Shown one piece after another: positions 460-61,600 of a stretch of 64,000 nt of DNA (positions are counted from its first letter, which is position 1; every line of letters starts with the position of its first letter). This DNA comes from Trichoplax adhaerens (lineage: Eukaryota > Animalia > Placozoa). The notes beneath the pieces are model-generated. The model saw only the letters and a program-made list of their open reading frames with translations. It did not search any database and was not told where the DNA came from. Both the position numbers and the translations under genes were made by a program. The stretch is from positions 1,295,199 to 1,359,198 of the forward strand of contig NW_002060947.1 of assembly GCF_000150275.1 (NCBI RefSeq), read 5' to 3'.

Positions 460-2551
460 CTGAATTAACAAAGTATCAGCAGTCAAAATTCGATATCGAT
501 TAAAAGTTACTGAATTACTTAATTTAAATATGGTTCATATTCGTTATAAGGTTTGACTAAAAACATTTCATTTATACATATTGTATCTTCTAATGGTTAT
601 GAGAAGTTTAAGAATAAGCCAGACAAAACGAAACTTTAAATTAAAATCTCTGATCTATGTTGTTAAATCTATGATATTTAGATATTACAAATAAATATAT
701 AATTGATCCCGAGATGATTATCAAAGCTGCGTTTAGACTGCTTAAAAAAATATTGACCGACATTATCTGTCATTCTCACCAAATACAATTTCTTGATTTG
801 ATGCCTTACACGTTGCAATCCATATTACAAAGGCATACAGTCCTATAATTTCCATTTTTTTCATTAAATAAGAATAAAATGATTAAAATTTTGATTTCTT
901 TGTGAAATTTGGCTTCTTAATGTTGATAATCTTATCTGGCTTCCTGATATGTAATGCATATGGTTCCAAGACTAATTCAAATTCGATACAAATGTTATTC
1001 TACCGTGATGATCTAATAATATCAATAAACGTCTGGCATCATAATGGATGCCATTCATATCTCTCCCAATCAGATAACGAATGGGGTAGAGCAAACTAAT
1101 CATATGTATCTATTTAGTACATCAAATACCTAAGAATAAAGATTACGAATAAGCTAGGATAATTATCCTACACGATCATAGCACATCACCGTAAGCCCGC
1201 TTAATGTGTTGCTACAGGAATAAAGTATTTTTATGTGCTGTACCAATAAAATGATTATTTTCAATGTCATTTGGTATTCCTATAGGCACCATAGACAAAA
1301 TATATGCCAATTTTTAATTGACGATGAATTTGTATTGCTAGAACATGATCTAGAATACCGAAATGATGACATTTAGTGCGATTTAAGATAAAAAAGAATG
1401 CTAGCATTAAACTGGCCCCCACCTACTTATACTTTAGCTTGTTTAAAAAAAGCAAAAGTAGATACTAATTCTTAGAAACTTTGGTAATTTATTAATACTT
1501 GTAAAAAATCATGCGAAAGTCTTTGTTTGATTTGTCAGAATCATTGCGGATCAACTAAAGTACCACCAATAGATCTGAATTACTCCTATTTTACCGAAAT
1601 CCGCTTTACATCTGCCGTATGTTAACAGCCTTGTGTCAATACTTAATATTATGTTGACAATTATCTGATTGTCCACCATCGCATGACCACGTTCTTTAAT
1701 CTAATTTCAAAATCAGAACTCATTTTTCATTCCAAATATTACCATATGAAAATGACAAACAATTAGCAAACAGAACAGCCGAGGCTTACTCAATTGGATT
1801 TTTCTAACATATGAAACAAAAAGAATTCTATTTAATTTCCATTAGCTAAGTTATGCAATGCCTAACAATTTTATGAATAATTAATTATTAGGGCCTAGAT
1901 GAAGATTCATTGTAATGAAAAGAGATTTTAAAATAAGCGATAGAAGATTTATTTTACCAGCTAGGAATAGCCCTAACTTGCAACTAGGTTTGGGAGAGTG
2001 TTTTCTAGCATACGCTAGCGTAATTTAGAATATCAATGATTGATATTCCTAGGTAGATAGGATTTAACACAGTGAGATCTCCAAACTTCTAGAAAATCAC
2101 AATATAATTTATTGTCGGCGAAGCCGTCACTTATATAGGCTTCGGTACCTAAAACTAATTTAACTACACGAGTTACCTCGTCTATTAGACATTAATCTAA
2201 TTCATACTCTAAAGAGCCTCTATTTATACGGATTAAACACAGTCTAATCCTATTAGATTTACTGTATCAGTATTAAAATTACTCAATTTCTAATAATAGT
2301 TTAACAATATTTGGCTATCTTACTAAGATATTTTATCTAAACTTAAAGATTGTACTTTCAACCTCGACATCCTTCGAGGCGATAGACACTATCTAGTTAA
2401 ACCAGTTGGAAATTACTATTTTAGTATATTTAATTCTAAATTAAGGATTGCTAAGACATCAAGTGTTAGCCACTAAAGTTACAAATCAAGGAGACCGTAG
2501 ACGTTACTAATATATAAGCAAATACAGAATATAACATAAAAATAATGTACA

Positions 2552-43630: not shown

Positions 43631-44473
43631 CTTGAAACATCATCATTTTAACGCCGCCAACGCCATTGCCGACAATCTTGTTGACAACATTATTCATCTT
43701 GTTATTATTCCATAGTTGCCAATTGCATTTCCTAAGGCCTTGTTGGCAACAATTATATTCAATCGTTGACAGCCAATTGCATTTCCTACGATCTTGTTGA
43801 CACCATCACCTGAAATTGAATAGCGACCTAGTCCTTTTGCCTACGCTCTTCTTCATCATCATTTAAGTGATTGGATGCGCCATTTTAAATCATCTCCTTG
43901 ACGCTATTGCAATCTTTCATCCTTGCCAATGTGCTAACATCCATTGGTAGTAGGGGCAATTTCTCCGCTTGCATCAACCAATTGCCACTCCATTTCAGAG
44001 AGTCTTGTTCACAACAGCATCATTTATTGAATCACTTGTAATGCCTTGCAATCAATTAACAAGAAGAAAATGGATTTGATCCTTGATTTGACACTATTCC
44101 TATTGCATTCTTGACTATGTGCTCAAATCGATTGATCCATTTCTATCTTACAAGAAAGACAATTTTACCCCTGGCTTAGACAGTCGGAGCAGCAATTTGC
44201 AAGCCTTTTCACTTTTCAAATTGCCATCATTAATAGTCTAATATCAACCATTGAAAAACGCCTGCCATTGATTGTTGTGCCCATCATGAGCCAAAGAGAA
44301 AAGTAGTTCAATTCAATCCATTCTCCATACGACAAGGAAGATAGCCCTTTTGAGTCTCGACACTCTTCATTTTTTTGTACTCTTTATTCAAACTTGCTAT
44401 CCTGTGGATTACTACGAGTCAATGAATAGGATTACTAACCATTGGATTAATGAAACATCTTTACTTTGTATAG

Positions 44474-47400
44474 TGAAATCATACCTAACCAATAATCCTG
44501 AAACCTTTGAAGAATTAGTCTTGGAATTGGCTAGCCCTCAACAACTGGAAAATTGGTTGAAAAGGAAAGGGAAAACAGTAACCAAATCAGGTAAGTTTTC
44601 ATCCATTGCCATCATCAATTCATCAACTAGCTAAATAACCTTGCTCCGACCACCAGTGTGGAAAAAATGCAATCACTATTCTACCTAGACTGAAATTCTT
44701 TTACTGCCATTTTCTTTCAAGCTCAATCACGTTCAAAGTAGAATACCTCAACTAAAATCCTTCTACTGTTAATTTCTTTCAAGCTCAATCACGTTCAAAG
44801 TAGAATACCTCAACTAAAATCCTTCTACTGTTAATTTCTTTCAAGCTCAACCATGTTCAAAGTAGAATATCTTACACTGTAGTGCATCATTTTTGCAACA
44901 ATTTTAGGCGCTTTTACAAGCAATCATCGTATAGAAAATAGCAAATTGACTTTCTCTGCAGTGGATCATTTTCTTCCATATTTTTCAATTCTGACTCCAT
45001 TATTGTAGACGCGGTTACGCCATTTTCGACACGTTTTGATTGATTTCTACTTTAGCTTAGTCGGATCGTTTTTTTCTACCTAATCTTGACCATCTTTCTG
45101 CCCTACTGCGTACTCGATCATCGCCATGGACTACTGCAAATCTTGCCGGGGAAGATTTAAAGTAGTCCATGTCATTGCGTTAAAGATCTGCCGCTACAGT
45201 TGATGATTTTTAACCTTTTTCTACCTCACTGCAGACTCGATCATAGCCTTGGACTAGGACTACTGGAAATCTTCCCCCAGAAGATTTCCAGTAGTCCATG
45301 TCATTGCGTTAAAGATCTGCCACTACAGTCGATGATTTTCAACCTTTTTCTACCCCACTGCAGACTCGATCATAGCCTTGGACTAGGACTACTGGAAATC
45401 TTCCCCGAGAAGATTTCCAGTAGTCCATGTCATTGCGTCAAAGATCTGCCACTACAGTCGATGATTTTCAACCTTTTTCTACCCCACTGCAGACTCGATC
45501 ATAGCCTTGGACTAGGATTACTGTAAATCTTCTCTGCAAATTTTCCCCGAGAAGATTTCCAGTAAGTAGTCCATGTCGTAACGTCAAAGATCTGCCGCTA
45601 CAGTCGATGATTTTCAACCTTTTTCTACCCCACTACAGACTCGATCATAGCCTTGGACTAGGACTACTGTAAATCTTCCCCCAGAACATTTCCAGTAGTC
45701 CATGTCATTGCGTTAAAGATCTGCCACTACAGTCGATGATTTTCAATCTTTTTTTACCCCACTGCAGACTCGATCATAGCCTTGGACTAGGATTACTGCA
45801 AATCTTGCCGGGGAAGATTTAAAGTAGTCCATGTCATTGCGTCAAAGATCTGCCGCTACAGTCGATGATTTTCAACCTTTTTTTACCCCACTGCAGACTC
45901 GATCATAGCCTTGGACTAGGATTACTGTAAATCTTCCCCCAGAAGATTTCCAGTAGTCCATGTCATTGCGTTAAAGATCTGCCACTACAGTCGATGATTT
46001 TCAACATTTTTTTACCCCACTACAGACTCGATCATAGCGTCCAAGATGGAACACTACAGACTACAGTAGATGATTGCAACTTGTTTGCTATCTCAACTTT
46101 GCCAATAGCAGTCTCGATAATAGCAAAACAGTTGTAACTGCAAGTTGTAGTTTACTAGTCCAATTTCATTTTCATTCTGTACTATAGTAGCACCCTCTCT
46201 GTTGATACGTATTCTCCAAGAAGTAGTTCAAGAGCGAGCGATTGGATTAATCTGTAAAATAAAAAGAATGAAAAGACTACTCTAGCGGCATGGAATTTCT
46301 TTCCACAGCACTCCCAATAGCAATTGCAGATACGGCACATGAAACTTTGCAATAATTCCTTTCAAGACCACCACCAGATCTAAATAGAATCCTTTCGTTT
46401 TCTGCTTTTTTATCTTCCAAATAGAATCCTTTCGTTTTCTGCTTTATCATCCAAATAGAATCCTTTCGTTTTCTGCTTTATCATCCTAATAGAATCCTTT
46501 CGTTTCCTGTTTTTTTATCATCCAATCATTTTCAATTCAAATCACCATCTTAATCAAAGTGCAAGCTAATGCATCAATGATGGATCAACACACAATAATA
46601 TAAAAATAATTGGTTTTTTGATTAATTGCATGTAAGGATAATCTACCCTCTGGTGGAAAGGCATAATCTTTCATGACATTTGTTAATCACTTAGTGTATG
46701 TGTTTTTTTTTTATGTTTTTTAATCGCCGGATCACTCTCCTACATTGCTTATGATACTCTCCATCATCAAGCAAAGTATTGATTATTATTTTTTTTCTTT
46801 TCCTTTTTGATTGATCCTTTTAATTGATTCAATGGTCATCAAGCTCGATAGCCTACAACAAATAAGATTAATTTTTATTTTCCCTTTTCCCCCCCCCCAT
46901 TGCTGCATATACTAGTACAGAGACTAGTTTTTGAGGATACGAGGGGGAAAAAGAAAAACAAAAATGTCCACATCAGAAAGAGATGATCGCTTTTCGTCCA
47001 TGTTATCCATCATGGTAGCCATTTTTTCTTTTTCTTTGTATGGAACAGATGTAAAAATGAAGTAATTAAGTGGAACAGAGAGAAGGAGGAAGTAGGCATG
47101 ATAATAGTTGTATAATTACATCAATCGATCGCCATATCGAATTAATTATCTCAACAAGATGAATTCAAACAGAAACATATGGCACATTCTTTAATTGCTA
47201 TGCCTATTACATTCGATCTTAGTTTGACGTCAAACTTGCTCATTGAAAGGCAACTAAAACTATAAATTGCATCCATATTGAACAAAATCACCAAGTTGCC
47301 ATGGCAATGATTGCCCATCTTTCTTTTTTTCTTTCTCCATCTTGATATTTACGTCACTAATCAATGGATTCTTGATTCCTTTTTAGCAACATTCGACAAA

Positions 47401-50400
47401 CTAACCAGCAATGATAATGATATGGTAAGTCTTGTAGGAGTAGTAGCCATTATTAGACTAGGACAAGAATAATCGAAAAATGACTTAGTTAAAATATATG
47501 GCAAAGAATCCATCATGCCTATGTGACACTAATCTGACTTGTTCTTCCTCATCCAATTGAAAGAAAATAAGGATTGCATTGATTTTTGATCATTAATGTT
47601 GACTTTGTATCAATGATAGGTGACAAGAAATAATCTAAAAAGACTACCTGGTACAGCAGATGGCCTTCTCCACAATAATGAATCCTATTTAACCAATAAC
47701 AATATCGGCAACAGTAGTAGTAGTAGTAGTAGTAGCAACACTACTAGTAGAGTGCTTGTTGCTAAATATGATCATCATTTACACGAAAAGAAAGAAGCAT
47801 CCAATAATAAAGGAAGCCACTTAAACAATTTTCAACTGATGAAAGTTTTAAATAACAGTATAAGCTCTGATGCTGATCAAAGTAGGATTCTCTATGATAT
47901 GGCTAAGCACATTGCTGCCAGTAAGCACTTGTTCAATTCAATCATAACATTTTAAGTCCATTTCAAATAGAATGAATCCAAAGAATTGAACTTTTTCTTT
48001 GTTTATTTCCTATAGCTGTTTCTGCTGACCATTATTCACTCTACACCGTCAACGAAAATGGCAAGGTAAGAAATAATAATATTGAATCAGCCATTATTGC
48101 ATATACATTGATTGATAGTCAAGGCGCTTCTCCACTTTATACCCACCTTACTTTCTACGGTAGTAGATAAACTCGTACATTATGATACGGGTTAAAAAGT
48201 GCACTACTTAAACAAATCGTTAAGCCAATGATGAACAGATTTCTTAAATCAACATAGAGTCTATCTTTATTACATCAATTACAAGAATTAATTATTATTA
48301 TCTTCAACGCCAATACTAATATTGAACAAAATGACATTGTTATTAATATTTGAATATCAAAATGTGGATCAATTTAGTCCATTTCTTTATATCAGCCGGA
48401 CCGTAAAGAGTAAGTAATATATAAAACGTGACTATTTTAAAAATGATCAAACGTGTTAAATAAAAAATACCTCGACATTTCAAGAATAAATTGAAACAAT
48501 TTCCAATAACTGCATTTTCAACCCAACCCAATACAACTACTTACTATAGTATCTATTGACTAATAAATATATACCCATCATCATCTCAATTTATATTTTA
48601 CTAGTAATGCCGCTATCACTAGTATACCCATCGAAATTGGATCAACTATGGTCGCTTATGTAGCTAAAACAAAAACTTGCTTGAATTTGCGCCCTGAGCA
48701 AATTCTCTTGGTAATAAATTATATCATCATAACGATCATGATTAGTAATAATGATAGTATAGACATAGGTATCATAAATTGCTTCATTTATCATTTTAAC
48801 AGGACGATCGTTTCCCAAAAGGAATCAGCTATGAAGGTAATAAAGAATAATAGATTCATAAAATGTTTGTTTAGCTTATCGACCAAATTTTTAATCGACA
48901 ATCATGCCATGATAGCCAATCATAATAACTATAATGATACTGCATCACTATATCGATACTATTTATTCAAAATTCTCTATCTCAATTTCTATTTGATATA
49001 GCTGTTTCAGTGGATTCAATAATATGTCAGCCAATCGTACTTCCTGACACTGCTCTAGTTGGTAAGATAGATATTCACATCAATTTATTACCTATTTCTT
49101 CTTCCATCGATAAACAATTTTTCATCCTGATCTCCTAAAATGAAGGACAAACTCTATCTTGAATCTAGTTAGGACATAAACACATTGATTTATCAGCATT
49201 AAATTAATATAATCACTCTCTCATTTTATTTTTAGGCGTTTTAGTACTTATTAAGACTGTGGGTAGTAAATCTCGATTTAGCAGCAACGATGAAGAGGTA
49301 CTAACTAACTATAATATATCATTAGTATCTAGATCATACAATACAAAAATTGGTTTCTTTACGAACTTATTTTAGTAACGAGCTCTTGATAAAATACAAT
49401 TAAGCCATGCAATTCAAAATCTTCACACATTACATTTTCAATTAGATTGTTGGAACTTTCTTACAATGGGGATCTCTAGCGCTATGCTCTACAAAGGTAA
49501 CAAACAACTGCAAGTATTTAATGCCAAATTTTTAACTATACTCACAGATTACTAAAAAAAATAGTTACTTTGCATTTGTAAATCAATTACCTAATCCTTA
49601 TACACAAATATACCATATGTATTATTCATTTTTTGACAATAAATACTTTTATTTCCAATTGCTGCTCCTACAGATGATGAAAGCCGTTGATCGCCAACGA
49701 CAACTACAAAATGTTTTGTTTTCCGTTTCTCAGTATGTCAATGGCCGATAGTAACTAAGAATTACTTTCTGATAATAAGCTATCCTCTAATATTAGGATG
49801 TATTATACTCTGGAGTGTATGTTATTGAAATAGTAATTTAAATTAGATGAAATATTTATGCTTAAATTAAATAAGATGTTATGTTTCAATTTTACTTATG
49901 ATTTCGCTTTAATTTTACTAGATCAATCTTCAATGAAGTTACAAAAAGAAACACCCTTCTCGAGATTATTATGGTATGATATCATTTCAGATATAGATTA
50001 TTATTTCAATTCTGATGTTATGCTGATAAATTGATAACACTAAAATCTATACCTGTAGGTCTCCGCCAAAAAATTACTAAATGCTGATCGATGTGCTCTG
50101 TTTTTGGTTGATAACGAAAATCAAGAACTCTACGCTGATTTATTCGATGAAAGTGAACCATTTGGCGATATTAAGATAGTGCCCAAGGAAAAGGATATCA
50201 GGTACACTTCTTAAAATCATGTTTATTTTTTTCGCAATGATTTCAGCTAATCAATTTCATTATTCAATATCGTCACAATAGATTTTCAGTCAAAAAAGGC
50301 ATTGCAGGACATGTTGTAACACATGGACAGATGCTTAATGTATCAGATGCTTATAAAGATTCAAGATTCAATCGGTATACAGTATACAAATATAAATTAA

Positions 50401-53381
50401 TGAAAAAAAACAAAAAACAATTAATTTAGGATTTATTATTATTACGTCAAATTTTTCCATTGCTCTCGCAATAAAAATAAAAATGACCTTTAATTTATAC
50501 TCTCAATATTCAGAGATATTGATATAAAGACTGGCTATACAACTCGATCCATTTTGTGCATGCCAATCATGAATAAAGGCCGGTTCGTCTATTAATTTTA
50601 ATGCAATTATTATTGTCTCTGCATTGTTAAGACAAGTGAAATATCTGCTGTAGAAACTGCCTAATCTAATCTAACTATAATTATTGATCGTGCGCTTATA
50701 AAAACTAATATTCTTGATGTAAGATTTTAATAAAAACCCAATTTCATTTATCTCTTTAGCTGTATAGGTGCTATTCAAATGTTGAATAAAATCAATGGGG
50801 ATTTTACGAAAGAAGGTGATTAAGTTTTCGTATTACTATTGATTTAGAGTTCAATTTTCCCCTTTCTTCTCTGACAATAATTTTACTTCACTTATTGATG
50901 TAAAATAACAATGATGACATTATACCCTTTCTAGATGAAGACGCATTTAGGATATTTACAGTTTATTGCAACTTGGCACTCCATACATCCGAGGTAACTT
51001 GAAATACTCATAATATAAATAAAAAATAACATTTCTTTTAACCACTGGGCTATTTCTTAAATAATTAATCCAAATTTATGAATAGATAGCAGATACGCAA
51101 TATGATGCCTTTACATATGCGCTAAAATTATTCTACTATTGTAATTTCAGATCTATGTACAACTGCGCAAATCAGAGAGCAAAAGGAAAGTTGCCCTCGA
51201 TTCCTACTTTTATCATAGCAGTTGTACAAATGAAGAAATGGAAGATGTTATTGCTTCCCCATATTTACAGTCAGAATTAATACCTACTCGCATAGAATCG
51301 TAAGTTAAAATTCAATTTTAGTACAATAGCAATTATTCTAATAACGTAAAGTCTAATAGAGAGATGTGATAAATTATTGTTGGCATATCGACATCGAGCA
51401 CTTAAGCATGAATAAATTTGATCTTTCATGAACAGCATCAATTTTACTGCTGACGATGCAAGTGCCGAATATACAGATCCGAATATATTGCCCCGACTCT
51501 TCTTGCATATGTTTAGGGAATTATTTGGAACAACTGGGTATACCAAATATCAAAAAGATCGAATAATAATTTGTTTTGATATACAAATTTAAAAAATTTT
51601 TTATTAATTCGTTAAATATCCACTTCATTTCCTTTAGATTCGATGTGTTCGATTTATGTCGATTCACCTTGACCTGTCGTAAAAATTATCGCCGAGTACC
51701 ATACCATAACTGGTATCATGCCTTCAATGTAACGCATAGCATGTATTACATAATCAAGAACAGCCCTGGCATGTTTGATCGTCTAGAGGTAGGATCCATT
51801 TCCATAAGCTTCAAAATTATCACAAAGTTTTTTTGTAATGCCCGGATGATAGCATGAATAAATCCAACATTGACTAGATATTATGCAACTTTTTTACTGC
51901 TTATTTTGGTTAATATTGATTATTTTGTAATTACTAAAAGAAAAAATAATTTCTTATTCCTTTTATTAGTGTTTGGCAATGTTTATTGGGTGTTTATGTC
52001 ACGATTTAGACCATCGGGGAACAAATAATGCTTTCCAGGTCAAGTCAGAAAACCCCTTAGCTGATTTGTATTCAACCTCAGTACTGGAACAACACCATTT
52101 CAATATGACAGTGATGATACTGCAGGTAAAAATAGTTGTCCTGGTTCATACAATAGCATAATATTATATTTGAATCTTTACTCTGATTATTAGTAAAAAT
52201 GTATGTTTCAAAATTTGCAACAAAAATGATCATGATAAAAAATTTCATTTCTATCAATTATTAACTATCATTGCTTCTTCGCATATACTAGCGTGATGGA
52301 CACACCATCTTATCGAGCTTATCAAAAGAAGATCACGAAATAGTAAGTTCATATACAAAATAATACTTTGACCCACATACTCATATATTATTCTAAGATT
52401 ACAATTCTATAAATATAATATCGATAAAAAAAATTACTTATCGCTTCCAAGTTGATCATACTGTTATAAATAGAATTGAATTTGAATAGATCAGGCCAAA
52501 AACTTATTACCAACTTCAACTTATTTTCTAGGTTATGAATTATATCCATGACGCAATTATCGCTACCGATTTAGCTCTCTACTTTGGCAATCGATCAACT
52601 TTACAAAAGCTTGTAGACAACAAAGAGTTCGACTGGAACATCCAACGCCATAGGTTAGACAATCTTAATACAGTATCTATATTTTCTAAATTCTACAACT
52701 TTAGTAAAGTTATAAATTAATATGATCTTAGATCCCGAGTTCGAGGATTAGCAATGACTGCATGCGATCTTATTGCCGTTGCAAAGCCATGGAAATACCA
52801 ATTTGAAACTGTCAAGCAAATTTTTGCCGAATTTTACGATCAGGTATTGATTCTTATGCATGTCTTTGCTTTAATAACAATCAACATAAAATCTAAACTT
52901 GGATATTATTAATGGCTTTCAATTACGCCAAATAGGGTGATGTAGAAAAGAGATTAGGTATAGCACCAGTTCCTATGATGGATAGAGATAAGGAATCGGA
53001 ATTACCAGCTAATCAGGTAACTTAACTTTAATGTGATAGTAATGAAATATCTTATTTTTTAAAGCTACTTTTTAATCTCAATCATCGCGACTTTTTTATG
53101 ATACTGAAATTTAATAATTAGGTCGGCTTTATAAATGGAATCTGTTTACCATGCTACGAGTTGTTAGCATACCTACTACCCAACACTCAGGCAATGGTAG
53201 ATAATATTATGTAAGTACTATATTTTATGGTCATCGACAGATTGAATCTTGTCATCATGTGTAGAATGACGATTAATAATTTCTTGATTTTTAAAGGATC
53301 AATCTCCAGCAATGGCAACGTCTATCTGACGAGCAAGATCAAATTGGAAAGGACGCTAAAGTAGTGAATTTATCCAATTAA
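44474..53381 (+). CDS. PDE10A: PDE10-type cyclic nucleotide phosphodiesterase (N-terminal helix, GAF-A, GAF-B, class I catalytic domain); 27 exons in this interval
   Basis: All introns are GT-AG and phase-consistent. Exons: 44474-44590, 47387-47424, 47620-47920, 48016-48065, 48378-48409, 48605-48710, 48803-48836, 49002-49061, 49236-49297, 49446-49496, 49674-49732, 49922-49973, 50059-50201, 50282-50374, 50514-50582, 50760-50815, 50935-50993, 51151-51299, 51436-51537, 51638-51788, 51970-52125, 52292-52342, 52532-52653, 52732-52843, 52936-53016, 53122-53210, 53297-53381 (TAA). PDE10-like motifs: [163 protein letters not shown]. The micro-exons 47387-47424 and 48378-48409 are the least certain. 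Confidence 0.95.
44695..44868. repeat. 62-bp tandem repeat, ~2.7 copies, in PDE10 intron 2
   Basis: TTTCTTTCAAGCTCAATCACGTTCAAAGTAGAATA at 44711, 44773 and 44835. Confidence 0.95.
45100..46040. repeat. 129-bp tandem repeat, ~7 copies, each carrying an inverted repeat, in PDE10 intron 2
   Basis: AGTAGTCCATGTC at about 45161, 45290, 45419, 45565, 45693, 45823 and 45952. A perfect 18-bp stem GGACTACTGGAAATCTTC/GAAGATTTCCAGTAGTCC lies at 45257-45297. Confidence 0.97.
46380..46525. repeat. 35-36-bp minisatellite, 4 copies
   Basis: AATAGAATCCTTTCGTTT(T/C)CTG..TTATC.TCC repeated. Confidence 0.95.
47225..47232. promoter_or_regulatory. Perfect CRE (TGACGTCA) inside a 16-bp palindrome; CRE variant TTACGTCA at 47349-47356
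   Basis: AGTTTGACGTCAAACT at 47221-47236. This is a motif match only; function is untested. Confidence 0.45.
47295..47308. promoter_or_regulatory. RFX X-box
   Basis: GTTGCCATGGCAAT matches the palindromic X-box GTTGCCATGGCAAC at 13/14 positions, about 80 bp upstream of exon 47387. Confidence 0.55.
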
Positions 53382-58431: not shown

Positions 58432-58444
58432 GTTTCCTAGCAAC
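58432..58444. promoter_or_regulatory. RFX X-box in the RPGR promoter
   Basis: GTTTCCTAGCAAC about 175 bp upstream of the ATG. Weaker sites are GTCACTATGGAGAG (58367-58380) and GTTACTATGGGCAG (58831-58844, intron 1). This is the expected position for a ciliary gene. Confidence 0.65.
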
Positions 58445-58619: not shown

Positions 58620-61600
58620 ATGGAAGTCGACGATAACGATATCCCAGGTAATGAACAATAATAATACGAATAATCGGATCAAATCCAACCCAACCCGTCC
58701 AACAGGCAAAATGGTATCTTAAAAGATACCATCATTTTCTCTATATACAATCGAGATGATTATACTACTCTTACTTTTATCCGATAGGAGAATTACTTAT
58801 TAAATAGACACGTAGACAACGTATGCAAATGTTACTATGGGCAGTTACTAGGTTAACAAATTGTTCAGTTATAGCTCAACTCTTAGCTAGAGAAGAATCA
58901 GTGTTACCAACCGCTTGTTTAATTTATTACTATTCTAAGATGGCAACGATCGCATCTTTGAAAGCAATTAATACTGTCTTCCATATTCAAAGTTACATTT
59001 GATTTAATATACTATGCCTACTCTTCTTTCTTGCTTATTTTGCTTCTTCTCCTTATTGAATGATGACTAGAAACTGGAGCGGTTTTTACTTTTGGTAAGA
59101 GTCGATTTGGTGATAACCGAACCAATAAATTTTGGATCCGTAGCGATAAAGTAACCGATATTGCTTGTGGTGACGAACACACGGTAGTAGTTACAGGTAT
59201 GTTAGCCCAACCTATTTGAAATCGATAAACACACTATTTGCTAAATAGGCATGGAATATCCGTATTTAGAATCGGCGATGAACGATAATCAATCATGGCC
59301 ATTTGAATTGCAGTCTTTAAAAATTACAACTATCTTTGATTTTCGTCTTCATCCTATCTATACCAATCTTGACTAATTGATTAAAATAGTGAGAGGATGA
59401 TGAATAGTCATACCAAAATTTGGGGATAATACCACTCATTTACTTTTATGAAAGCAAAGATAGCGTTGTAACATTTTGAGGTGTAAATGAAATAACTTGT
59501 TCATATTGTTCAATAGAAAATGGACGACTTTTCACATTCGGTAATAATGAATGGGGACAACTAGGAATTGGTAGTAATAAAACTAGAAATAAACCAACCA
59601 CTGTCAAAGGTGTGCTCAAAAAATGAATATAATATTCATAAGGATTAAAAGCAATAGTAAATGTGATCCATTAGCAAATGTTATCGATTATTTAAGTATT
59701 ATCTTAGTGATACCATCATGACAGCGTTAATGCACTACACTAGAATAGGTTATGAAATTGAACATATACTAAAAATGAGTAATGGCCAGTATTTAATTTA
59801 TTTTGATACTTGTAAAATAGCTTTGAAACCAGAAAAAATAACTCATGTGGCCGCAGGAAGATTCCATACGTTAGCTGTTACAGGTAATGAGGTTGAACAA
59901 TCTCTTATTTTTAATTGGACTCTAAATTATTACCCATATTCCACATCATCATCAATAATATACTATTATAACAATCTGATAGAAGGATGATTAAGATTGT
60001 AATGCCTATGTCAGTATTAATGTAGACGAAAAATCATAACCGACTTAGAGATTGAAAACATTTTCTTTATTAATTTGTAATGACAATTATTATAATAAAC
60101 TTATCATTCGTCACTTTAAATTTAAACCTATTGTTTTCTCGATTATAACGAGCAAGCAAACTAACAATACTTTCGAATAGCTTATATGCTAATCTTTGTC
60201 TTTTGACCAGATTCCAATAAATTATATAGCTTTGGTCAAGGTAGTGAAGGTGCATTAGGACATGGCGATGAAACGGTAAATAACTTACTGATCTCTTGAT
60301 CTGTAATTGATAAACTAATTGAAGTATACGTAATCTATCTATTTCGATGGACTATTCTGTAGCACAGAATGAATTGTATCGCTTCAAGTTTTAAGTATAT
60401 TAGCATCAGCCTTAAATGCTCTAAATATGCACAAATATGTAAACATGAGCAAATTAATAGACTATTGTCCATGTTCTTTTCTTAACCTTCACACTTATAT
60501 ATATATATATATATATATATCCATTTAATTGGTCATCATTTAATGATACTGTATCTATAGGATCTTAATATGCCAACATCAATTGAAAGTTTAGAAGATA
60601 AAGACGTAAACATCATTGCTTGCGGCGGTTACCATTCTGCTGCCATAACAAGTGAGTAGTAGCATTCAACATGTACAATCACGATAATATCTCCTTTACT
60701 AAGATACTACCAATTCCTATACCTGGAGATGGTATCTACTTTATTTCAATCCATTTTAAAAATGGCTACAAGTTATTTCATTTCTTTTTCATTGACTTCT
60801 AGAAAATGGAGAGCTATATATTTGGGGTAGTAATAGTGAAGGTCAACTTGGCTTAAAGGTATTCTAACCTCAGCAGCATATATACGTAATATCTGTCTGA
60901 AGGATACCGTACACTTCAATCTATCATCATACATTTGGTTATCATATTGAGCATTTTTTTTAAACCATAACTTACTTACTTTTAATGTCTATAGAATGAT
61001 ACAATATCATATCCGACAATGCTGGATCTGGGTAAATCGGTGATTTCAGTTGCTTGCGGTTATTATCATACAGCCGTAGTGACAGGTTTGTTTCTAGCAA
61101 GACATATCGTACTTTTTTCGTCCATTTCTGTTACGTTGGTAGCATGTATTATTTAGGTTGTATAATCACTTATATCATACTAAGAATCACATATTGAACA
61201 GTTCAATTAATTGAAGTATCCAATTTATATTAAATACAATACCTACACTCGTTTACAGCTGATGGCAAACTTTATACATTTGGTGAAACAGAAGGTGGTA
61301 AATTAGGTTTAGGAGATATAGAAGCGCACAAAGTAACAAAGCCAAAGGTTGTTAAAGGAATATCCGGTAAAGTTGTTAAAGTTGCTTGTGGTGGAAATCA
61401 CACTGTCGCTTTAACAGGTATGCTCCACCATATCATTTTGTGATGTTGAAATCATAAGACTCGATTATAATTCAATTCTATCAAGATTATGACGTCCTTG
61501 AAGGCTGATAGTTATTAAAATTTTCTATTTAATTGATGATTATTATATAGCTTCTGGCCAAGTTTATACATTTGGATCAGGACAAAATGGCCAATTAGGG

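Follow-up and report, generated by a model that had tools for sequence, protein, structure and literature searches.

Results

The window analysed here, a stretch of 64,000 nucleotides from Trichoplax adhaerens, contains a GAF-GAF phosphodiesterase gene that is PDE10-like by exon-level searches (Table 1). The architecture of the gene was read exon by exon and not as a joined protein, and Pfam searches with individual exons often returned no match. The PDEase_I family was matched on three exons. In searches of the PDB, PDE10A was the top match for the GAF-B exon and for the catalytic exon: the GAF-B exon matched the GAF-B domain of PDE10A with an E-value of 1.5e-10 as against 0.096 for PDE2A, while for the catalytic exon PDE2A came close behind PDE10A, by a small margin. 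The PDE10-like identity proposed in the original prediction is thus supported by these two exons. A representative search with the catalytic exon gave distant phosphodiesterases and exon-sized fragments at no more than 78% identity, and these matches served only for mapping exons by tblastn. A literature search pairing Trichoplax with PDE10 found nothing.

Table 1. Features of the PDE10-like gene and of the intron preceding its 38-nt exon
Feature	Position in window	Strand	Basis
Upstream coding exon, N-terminal helix motif of GAF-PDEs	44474..44590	+	
Smaller tandem array, intronic	44682..44869		
129-bp tandem array, 6.9 copies, intronic	45128..46038	.	
Smaller tandem array, intronic	46378..46513		
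16-bp perfect palindrome AGTTTGACGTCAAACT, CRE octamer TGACGTCA at its centre	47221..47236	.	Read from sequence
GGCAAC, isolated RFX half-site	47249..47254	.	Read from sequence
Near-perfect X-box palindrome GTTGCCATGGCAAT, 13/14	47295..47308	.	Read from sequence
TTACGTCA, CRE variant	47349..47356	.	Read from sequence
38-nt internal coding micro-exon, (x) + 12 residues	47387..47424	+	AG and GTAAGT borders; ortholog
Coding exon 3' of the 38-nt exon, 301 nt, N-terminal linker preceding GAF-A	47620..47920	+	
GAF-B exon	50059..50211	+	PDB top match 2zmf
Catalytic exon, HDLDHRG metal-binding motif	51970..52158	+	Pfam PDEase_I 1.1e-21; PDB PDE10A 2.4e-17

At the 5' end of the gene, the upstream coding exon gave weak tblastn matches to the N-terminal parts of two proteins (P0049, residues 89-122; P0116, residues 56-84), and an in-frame ATG at 44423 provides an alternative beginning for it. 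The helix motif that it encodes N-terminal of GAF-A presumably corresponds to the one in the human PDE10A sequence. The exon ends within a codon, to which it contributes one base and the 38-nt exon two. The 301-nt exon that follows is preceded by AG, has a GT donor at 47921 and is in frame with the 38-nt exon; its open reading frame matched P0151 at 69% identity, and blastn gave 69% to two metagenome contigs. It had been predicted that the 38-nt exon is in frame with all downstream exons, and this holds for the next two, which are the ones that were checked.

The 38-nt exon itself is real. Its acceptor AG lies at 47385-86 and its 3' end is an ATG followed by GTAAGT. A colinear orthologous fragment was found on the same two ENA metagenome contigs (L020 and L021, 1.6-1.7 kb), where the micro-exon occupies positions 106-143 of L021 and reads (x)TYDKLSSNDNET. 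The AG and GT borders and the reading frame are kept, 26 of the 38 positions are identical, and 7 of the 12 differences are synonymous. In place of the terminal ATG, the ortholog has ACG (Thr). Since the borders, the frame and the residues preceding the ATG are conserved whereas the ATG is not, the comparison marks the 38-nt exon as internal, coding and conserved, of a constitutive type, and ATG 47422 as a lineage-specific codon within it rather than a conserved start. This result contradicts the dedicated first exon and start codon that had been proposed for a short form of the enzyme. A word search with the open reading frame at 44290-44631 for the ortholog's upstream exon found nothing. A pattern scan of metagenomes for the micro-exon junction returned three contigs, which were rejected as chance matches because only a 23-bp word was shared.

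The intron preceding the micro-exon contains tandem arrays, as had been noted. Because 47100-47450 is single-copy in the genome, an origin of the palindromes from a repeat or transposon was ruled out, and a CpG-island promoter was rejected because the observed/expected ratio of CpG is 0.54. All the motifs reported here before, namely the CRE palindrome, the half-site, the X-box and the CRE variant, are present at the positions given for them, as is the exon.

We then consider the CRE-type motifs. The full CRE palindrome lies at 47225-47232. The octamer TGACGTCA occurs twice in the window (0.54 expected), and it is unremarkable by itself because 10 of 100 shuffles contain at least two. The extended 12-mer TTTGACGTCAAA is not enriched, since it occurs 14 times in the genome as against 20 times for a control. 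The variant TTACGTCA overlaps a forkhead-like TATTTAC (47346-52) and adjoins a branch-point-like CTAAT (47357-61); it falls within the stretch of branch point and polypyrimidine tract that belongs to the micro-exon acceptor. It has no counterpart in L021. One pKID/CREB-type gene was identified by a PF02173 match of 28.6 bits, over the cut-off. Two CRE-like octamers lie within 75 bp of the X-box, which is unusual: the expectation is ∼0.01 (the octamers occur in the window at 0.038 per 614 bp), and around 35 other X-boxes, searched to a distance of 300 bp, only one such octamer was found. X-boxes are thus not regularly accompanied by a CRE. The full palindrome and a pKID gene exist, but there is neither a genome-wide excess nor recurrence beside X-boxes to support the proposed role of the CRE.

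The X-box matches 13 of the 14 positions of GTTGCCATGGCAAC and departs from the strict consensus GTNRCC-N(0-3)-RGYAAC in its last base, which is T for C; working X-boxes of other animals often show such a mismatch. It is the only site with up to two mismatches in the window (0.10 expected), and it is situated ∼90 bp upstream of the micro-exon and 113 nt before ATG 47422. The nearby GGCAAC is uninformative by itself because the window contains 19 GTTGCC/GGCAAC hexamers. The ortholog contigs of 1.6-1.7 kb contain neither an X-box (up to three mismatches) nor a CRE (up to one mismatch), and this covers the 105 bp that precede the micro-exon. The absence of the X-box is weak evidence because L021 ends ∼13 bp past the aligned position, and the contig does not reach as far as the main CRE.

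Genome-wide, X-box palindromes with at most one mismatch number 39, as compared with 10, 4 and 8 for three composition-matched controls. This ∼5-fold excess implies that most instances of the near-perfect class are not due to chance, with roughly one in five expected by chance. The genome also encodes RFX factors, as shown by at least four matches to the DNA-binding domain PF02257 at 3-4 or more loci, all over the cut-off (best 2e-16). A DNAH10 ortholog (8j07_k8, 7.5e-15) has a near-perfect X-box 337 nt ahead of its ATG, and others stand ∼270 nt before a gene for an axonemal inner protein that is TEX49-like (8snb_9J, 9.5e-10) and 231 nt before a p25-alpha+DCX gene. The intronic X-box is of the ATTGCC/GGCAAT variant, and the three other sites of this variant all lie 180-370 nt before the starts of open reading frames, which belong to an FHA-domain gene, an ankyrin gene (ANKUB1/ANKRD60-like) and one gene of unknown kind. 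At least three sites adjoin non-ciliary genes identified by eye (ADH-like, MFS transporter and VPS13-like), and two further sites are copies of one repeat. PDB searches with open reading frames adjoining X-boxes in L038, L031 and L041 gave no match, nor did an Atlas search for L037. The suggested link between X-boxes and cilia is in this respect supported for the class, which is over-represented and found upstream of axonemal genes in a genome that has RFX genes. A literature search gave a single paper, PMC4635004, in which Trichoplax, RFX and X-box occur together. PMC3493443 deals with FoxJ1 only.

Discussion

Here, we have shown that a near-perfect X-box lies in an intron of a PDE10-like gene, ∼90 bp upstream of a conserved micro-exon. 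The X-box is likely to be a true target of the organism's RFX factors. The reading that we favour, tentatively, is that the micro-exon is an internal coding exon and the X-box an intragenic RFX-responsive element. If bound by RFX factors, such an element could raise PDE10 transcription in ciliated cells, acting either on the upstream promoter, as an enhancer, or as an internal start region; that it is an RFX-responsive element of one kind or the other is plausible. The CRE palindrome and TTACGTCA may add a bZIP input, but they are equally likely to be fortuitous.

It is also possible, though we would not call it probable, that the cluster of X-box, CRE palindrome and TTACGTCA has arisen by chance where an AT-rich intron reaches its 3' end, with no regulation and with the micro-exon spliced into one long transcript. 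This would fit with the count of TGACGTCA, which is within chance, with the lack of genome-wide enrichment of the extended CRE, with the scarcity of CRE-like octamers near the other 35 X-boxes, with the placement of TTACGTCA in the acceptor zone, and with the ortholog fragment, which shows none of the motifs. The controls, moreover, yield 4-10 near-perfect X-boxes per genome. On the other hand, the ∼5-fold excess of the class, the position of all three other same-variant sites upstream of ORF starts, and the two CRE-like octamers so close to the X-box all argue against a chance origin. As the motifs were chosen after the fact among many possible ones, the cluster is suggestive only as evidence that it is not a chance one.

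The original prediction went further. It proposed an intronic CRE and X-box promoter with transcription starting just upstream of 47387 and translation from ATG 47422, giving a cAMP-inducible, cilium-linked short isoform with the GAF-GAF-catalytic architecture. We consider this model unlikely. The in-frame ATG has a G at both -3 and +4, and its distance of 113 nt from the X-box is promoter-proximal too, although shorter than at the other X-box genes examined, where it is 180-370 nt; the genome has RFX and pKID genes, and the short forms of vertebrate PDE4 provide a precedent for intronic cAMP-inducible promoters. However, the ATG is replaced by ACG in the ortholog, where the residues preceding it are conserved as protein, and no other ATG is in frame in 47311-47422. 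The two out-of-frame ATGs at 47411 and 47417, which had been given as a caveat, are indeed there; they open a five-codon upstream frame that overlaps ATG 47422 and stops in the next exon. A third lies at 47364, upstream of the acceptor, and would be included by any transcription start upstream of it. The CRE, in addition, is not enriched, and none is seen in the ortholog fragment. The short isoform and its cAMP feedback loop are unsupported, and the promoter and isoform claim as a whole is a motif-based hypothesis. More doubtful still is the idea that ciliated cells have a PDE10 form of their own, made from an internal promoter that RFX drives and that includes a CREB-responsive element. The least likely reading is that the motifs serve a minus-strand transcript: an open reading frame lies at 46927-47115 on that strand and its ATG at 47022 is 272 nt from the X-box, within the range of the other X-box genes, but it has only 32 codons from ATG to stop and no recognisable family, and no coding frames follow it in the region of 44.6-46.9 kb, where tandem repeats make up most of the sequence.

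If the X-box works, as our favoured reading of an intragenic RFX-responsive element would have it, the RFX regulon of a placozoan-type animal would include PDE10, and cyclic-nucleotide signalling would be tied to the cells with motile cilia that drive its locomotion and feeding. Were the RFX/CREB internal promoter true as well, the breakdown of cyclic nucleotides would, in this early-branching and nerveless animal, be part of the programme of ciliary genes and subject to cAMP feedback, a connection older than nervous systems. A more solid by-product of this work is that near-perfect X-boxes are over-represented and mark the promoters of axonemal genes in this genome. Another is that exon-level matches to open reading frames of metagenome assemblies can yield orthologous DNA for footprinting.

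We would like to compare the locus with three known systems. The short forms of vertebrate PDE4D and PDE4B are made from intronic cAMP-inducible promoters and have first exons and start codons that are unique to them. In the present locus, too, a cyclic-nucleotide phosphodiesterase gene carries a full palindromic CRE in an intron, upstream of exons common to all forms. Unlike in PDE4, the exon that follows is internal and coding, with a conserved acceptor and a non-conserved ATG, the CRE is not enriched, and the enzyme is a GAF-PDE rather than a UCR-PDE. Vertebrate PDE10A consists of GAF-A, GAF-B and a catalytic domain and has N-terminal splice variants. The lead of PDE10A over PDE2A at the catalytic exon is small and the architecture is known here from separate exons, but the GAF-B and catalytic exons both match PDE10A best in the PDB, and the N-terminal helix motif precedes GAF-A.

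The X-boxes bound by RFX/DAF-19 are promoter elements of ciliary genes in C. elegans, Drosophila and vertebrates. The candidate site differs from them in that it lies in the intron of a signalling enzyme and not before a structural ciliary gene, in that its last base is off the RGYAAC consensus, and in that none was seen in the short ortholog fragment. It resembles them in being an imperfect palindrome in which an AT spacer separates two half-sites of the GTTGCC/GGCAAC type, in occurring together with RFX genes, and in belonging to a class of sites that, in this same genome, lies 180-370 nt upstream of the start codons of axonemal genes.

Results and discussion

We tentatively propose that, in a PDE10-like gene, a probably genuine RFX site lies 5' of a conserved internal micro-exon and would serve as an intragenic regulatory element. 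That the gene is of PDE10 type, as the original prediction held, is borne out by exon-by-exon inspection, which supports a PDE10-like GAF-GAF phosphodiesterase. Three exon-sized ORFs match Pfam PDEase_I (top 1.1e-21), the catalytic exon 51970-52158 has PDE10A as its top PDB match (2.4e-17, a narrow lead over PDE2A), and the GAF exon 50059-50211 matches PDE10A GAF-B at 1.5e-10 vs 0.096 for PDE2A. The helix motif preceding GAF-A in GAF-PDEs is encoded by exon 44474-44590, which gave weak tblastn matches to two proteins (P0049, residues 89-122; P0116, residues 56-84) and whose product we take to resemble human PDE10A. The codon split across the junction takes one base from this exon and two from the 38-nt exon, and therefore the long form reads through both; the intervening intron contains tandem arrays of 62, 129 and 34 bp. 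An in-frame ATG at 44423 shares the open stretch (44423-44590) of exon 44474-44590. The long isoform could start there without an upstream exon, in which case the proposed 18-kb first intron would no longer be needed. Our literature search found nothing linking Trichoplax with PDE10.

A word search with ORF 47620-47952 returned a single relative, P0151 (69% identity), encoded on a pair of contigs from ENA metagenome assemblies, L020 and L021 (ERZ27263980 k141_388608; ERZ23499115 scaffold_45488). Both assemblies contain an identical 1.4-kb PDE10-like gene fragment that is colinear with the window, with DNA identities of 69% to 47617-48105 and 65-69% to the GAF-A exon region 48592-49321; presumably a related placozoan-type organism in the sample contributed this piece of the same gene. 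The counterpart of the micro-exon, L021:106-143, keeps the length and the AG and GT borders, and encodes (x)TYDKLSSNDNET in place of the window's (x)+12 residues. Identity is 26/38 (68%) in the micro-exon, 48% in the intron upstream and 51% in the intron downstream, and 7 of the 12 base differences in the micro-exon are synonymous. This pattern marks a translated exon spliced to an upstream coding exon, and the 38-nt segment is a conserved internal coding exon.

The motifs reported at the intron end, and the exon itself, are all present where predicted (Table), as are the two out-of-frame ATGs (47411 and 47417) raised as a caveat; a third lies at 47364, 5' of the micro-exon acceptor. Region 47100-47450 of the window (G000:C1410:1295199-1359198) occurs only once in the genome searched (105.6 Mb, 1414 contigs, GC ~33%), so the palindromes are not repeat-derived. 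A forkhead-like TATTTAC overlaps the CRE-like octamer (47346-47361 region), and a branch-point-like CTAAT abuts it ~26 nt 5' of the acceptor AG. This octamer, described as a CRE variant, could be no more than a component of the splice-acceptor region.

Table. Motifs and other features in the window and at two comparison loci
Feature	Position	Strand	Basis
16-bp palindrome AGTTTGACGTCAAACT	47221-47236		read from sequence
GGCAAC	47249-47254		read from sequence
X-box GTTGCCATGGCAAT	47295-47308		read from sequence
CRE-like octamer TTACGTCA	47349-47356		read from sequence
38-nt micro-exon, AG / GTAAGT borders, last codon ATG	47387-47424	+	read from sequence
ORF with ATG 47022	46927-47115	-	
Degenerate X-box-like word GTTTCCTAGCAAC	58432-58444	+	
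Degenerate X-box-like word GTTAACCTAGTAAC	58844-58857	-	
X-box GTTACCATGGCAAC, locus L010 (G000:C1406:2462540-2465553)	1501-1514		
X-box GTTGCTATGGCAAC, locus L014 (G000:C1409:602329-605342)	1501-1514		

With one mismatch allowed, the X-box palindrome occurs at 39 sites genome-wide, all carrying one mismatch and none exact, against 10, 4 and 8 for three controls of the same base composition (read backwards, half-sites everted, and the everted pattern read backwards). The excess is roughly five-fold; part of the count is repeat-derived, because two of the 39 (L002, G000:C995; L007, G000:C1398:557895-560908) lie in copies of one repeated element having an 89-aa ORF in common. RFX DNA-binding domains are encoded by at least three to four loci. 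Inspection of the DNA flanking the 38 other sites placed the L010 X-box 337 nt 5' of the start codon in an ortholog of DNAH10, axonemal dynein heavy chain 10 (8j07_k8, 7.5e-15, alignment beginning at residue 1). This locus is a clear instance, within this genome, of a ciliary promoter of RFX type. The L014 X-box lies ~270 nt 5' of a TEX49-like axonemal inner protein ORF matching the homologue in the sea-urchin sperm doublet structure 8snb (8snb_9J, 9.5e-10), another lies 231 nt 5' of a p25-alpha+doublecortin gene, and one adjoins a weak SAXO5-like match. The ATTGCC/GGCAAT variant of the window X-box recurs at three sites, all 180-370 nt 5' of ORF starts: ahead of an FHA-domain gene, an ankyrin protein nearest the ANKUB1/ANKRD60 clusters (a lead only), and an ORF without assigned family. 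Counter-examples, identified by eye, adjoin ADH-like, MFS-transporter-like and VPS13-like genes. The usual position is promoter-proximal. Given the class excess, the RFX genes and these neighbours, an X-box of such quality in this genome is more likely to be functional than not. To that extent the original idea of an X-box promoter gains support. Elsewhere in the window, two degenerate X-box-like words lie 200-650 bp 5' of the point where an RPGR-like gene has its first RCC1-type exon (59067-); they are not significant alone, since ~2.7 such matches are expected per window.

That the motifs cluster by chance is a serious possibility, if short of probable. Against an expectation of 0.54, TGACGTCA has two copies in the window, a count reached by 10% of shuffles. 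The idea of the CRE as a selected element found no backing: the 12-mer TTTGACGTCAAA occurs 14 times genome-wide vs 20 for its control, and CRE plus X-box is not a recurring architecture, because one CRE-like octamer vs 1.3 expected lies within 300 bp of 35 other X-boxes. The genome has a single pKID (CREB-type) domain. Scanning L020 and L021 gave no X-box (≤3 mismatches) and no CRE (≤1 mismatch), and TTACGTCA has no counterpart in the ortholog contig; absence of the X-box is weak evidence, because L021 covers just 105 bp 5' of the micro-exon and the window X-box spans -92 to -79. The position of the main CRE falls outside that coverage, and for this element the scan carries no weight. A search for further orthologous DNA yielded only these two contigs. 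The window X-box has two CRE-like octamers less than 75 bp away, a locally unusual arrangement (expectation ~0.01) that, allowing for 39 X-boxes and many recognisable motifs, is suggestive, no more.

The exact model first put forward, in which cAMP induces a short isoform that starts at ATG 47422, is improbable. In addition to the unremarkable CRE statistics and the coding constraint on the micro-exon, the ortholog has ACG where this exon ends in ATG, which leaves the proposed start unconserved, and no other in-frame ATG lies between 47311 and 47422. Initiation there would need leaky scanning past two to three ATGs: the five-codon frame opened by 47411 and 47417 runs across ATG 47422 and terminates within the next exon. 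An antisense transcript from ATG 47022, 272 nt from the X-box, is a minor alternative that we consider very unlikely; its ORF has only 32 codons and no recognisable family.

Under our proposal of a conserved micro-exon preceded by an RFX site, the putative intronic site would act as an enhancer or an internal start region, with promoter activity a candidate role. As background, one study shows that FoxJ1 from a placozoan is able to activate motile-cilia genes in zebrafish (PMC3493443).
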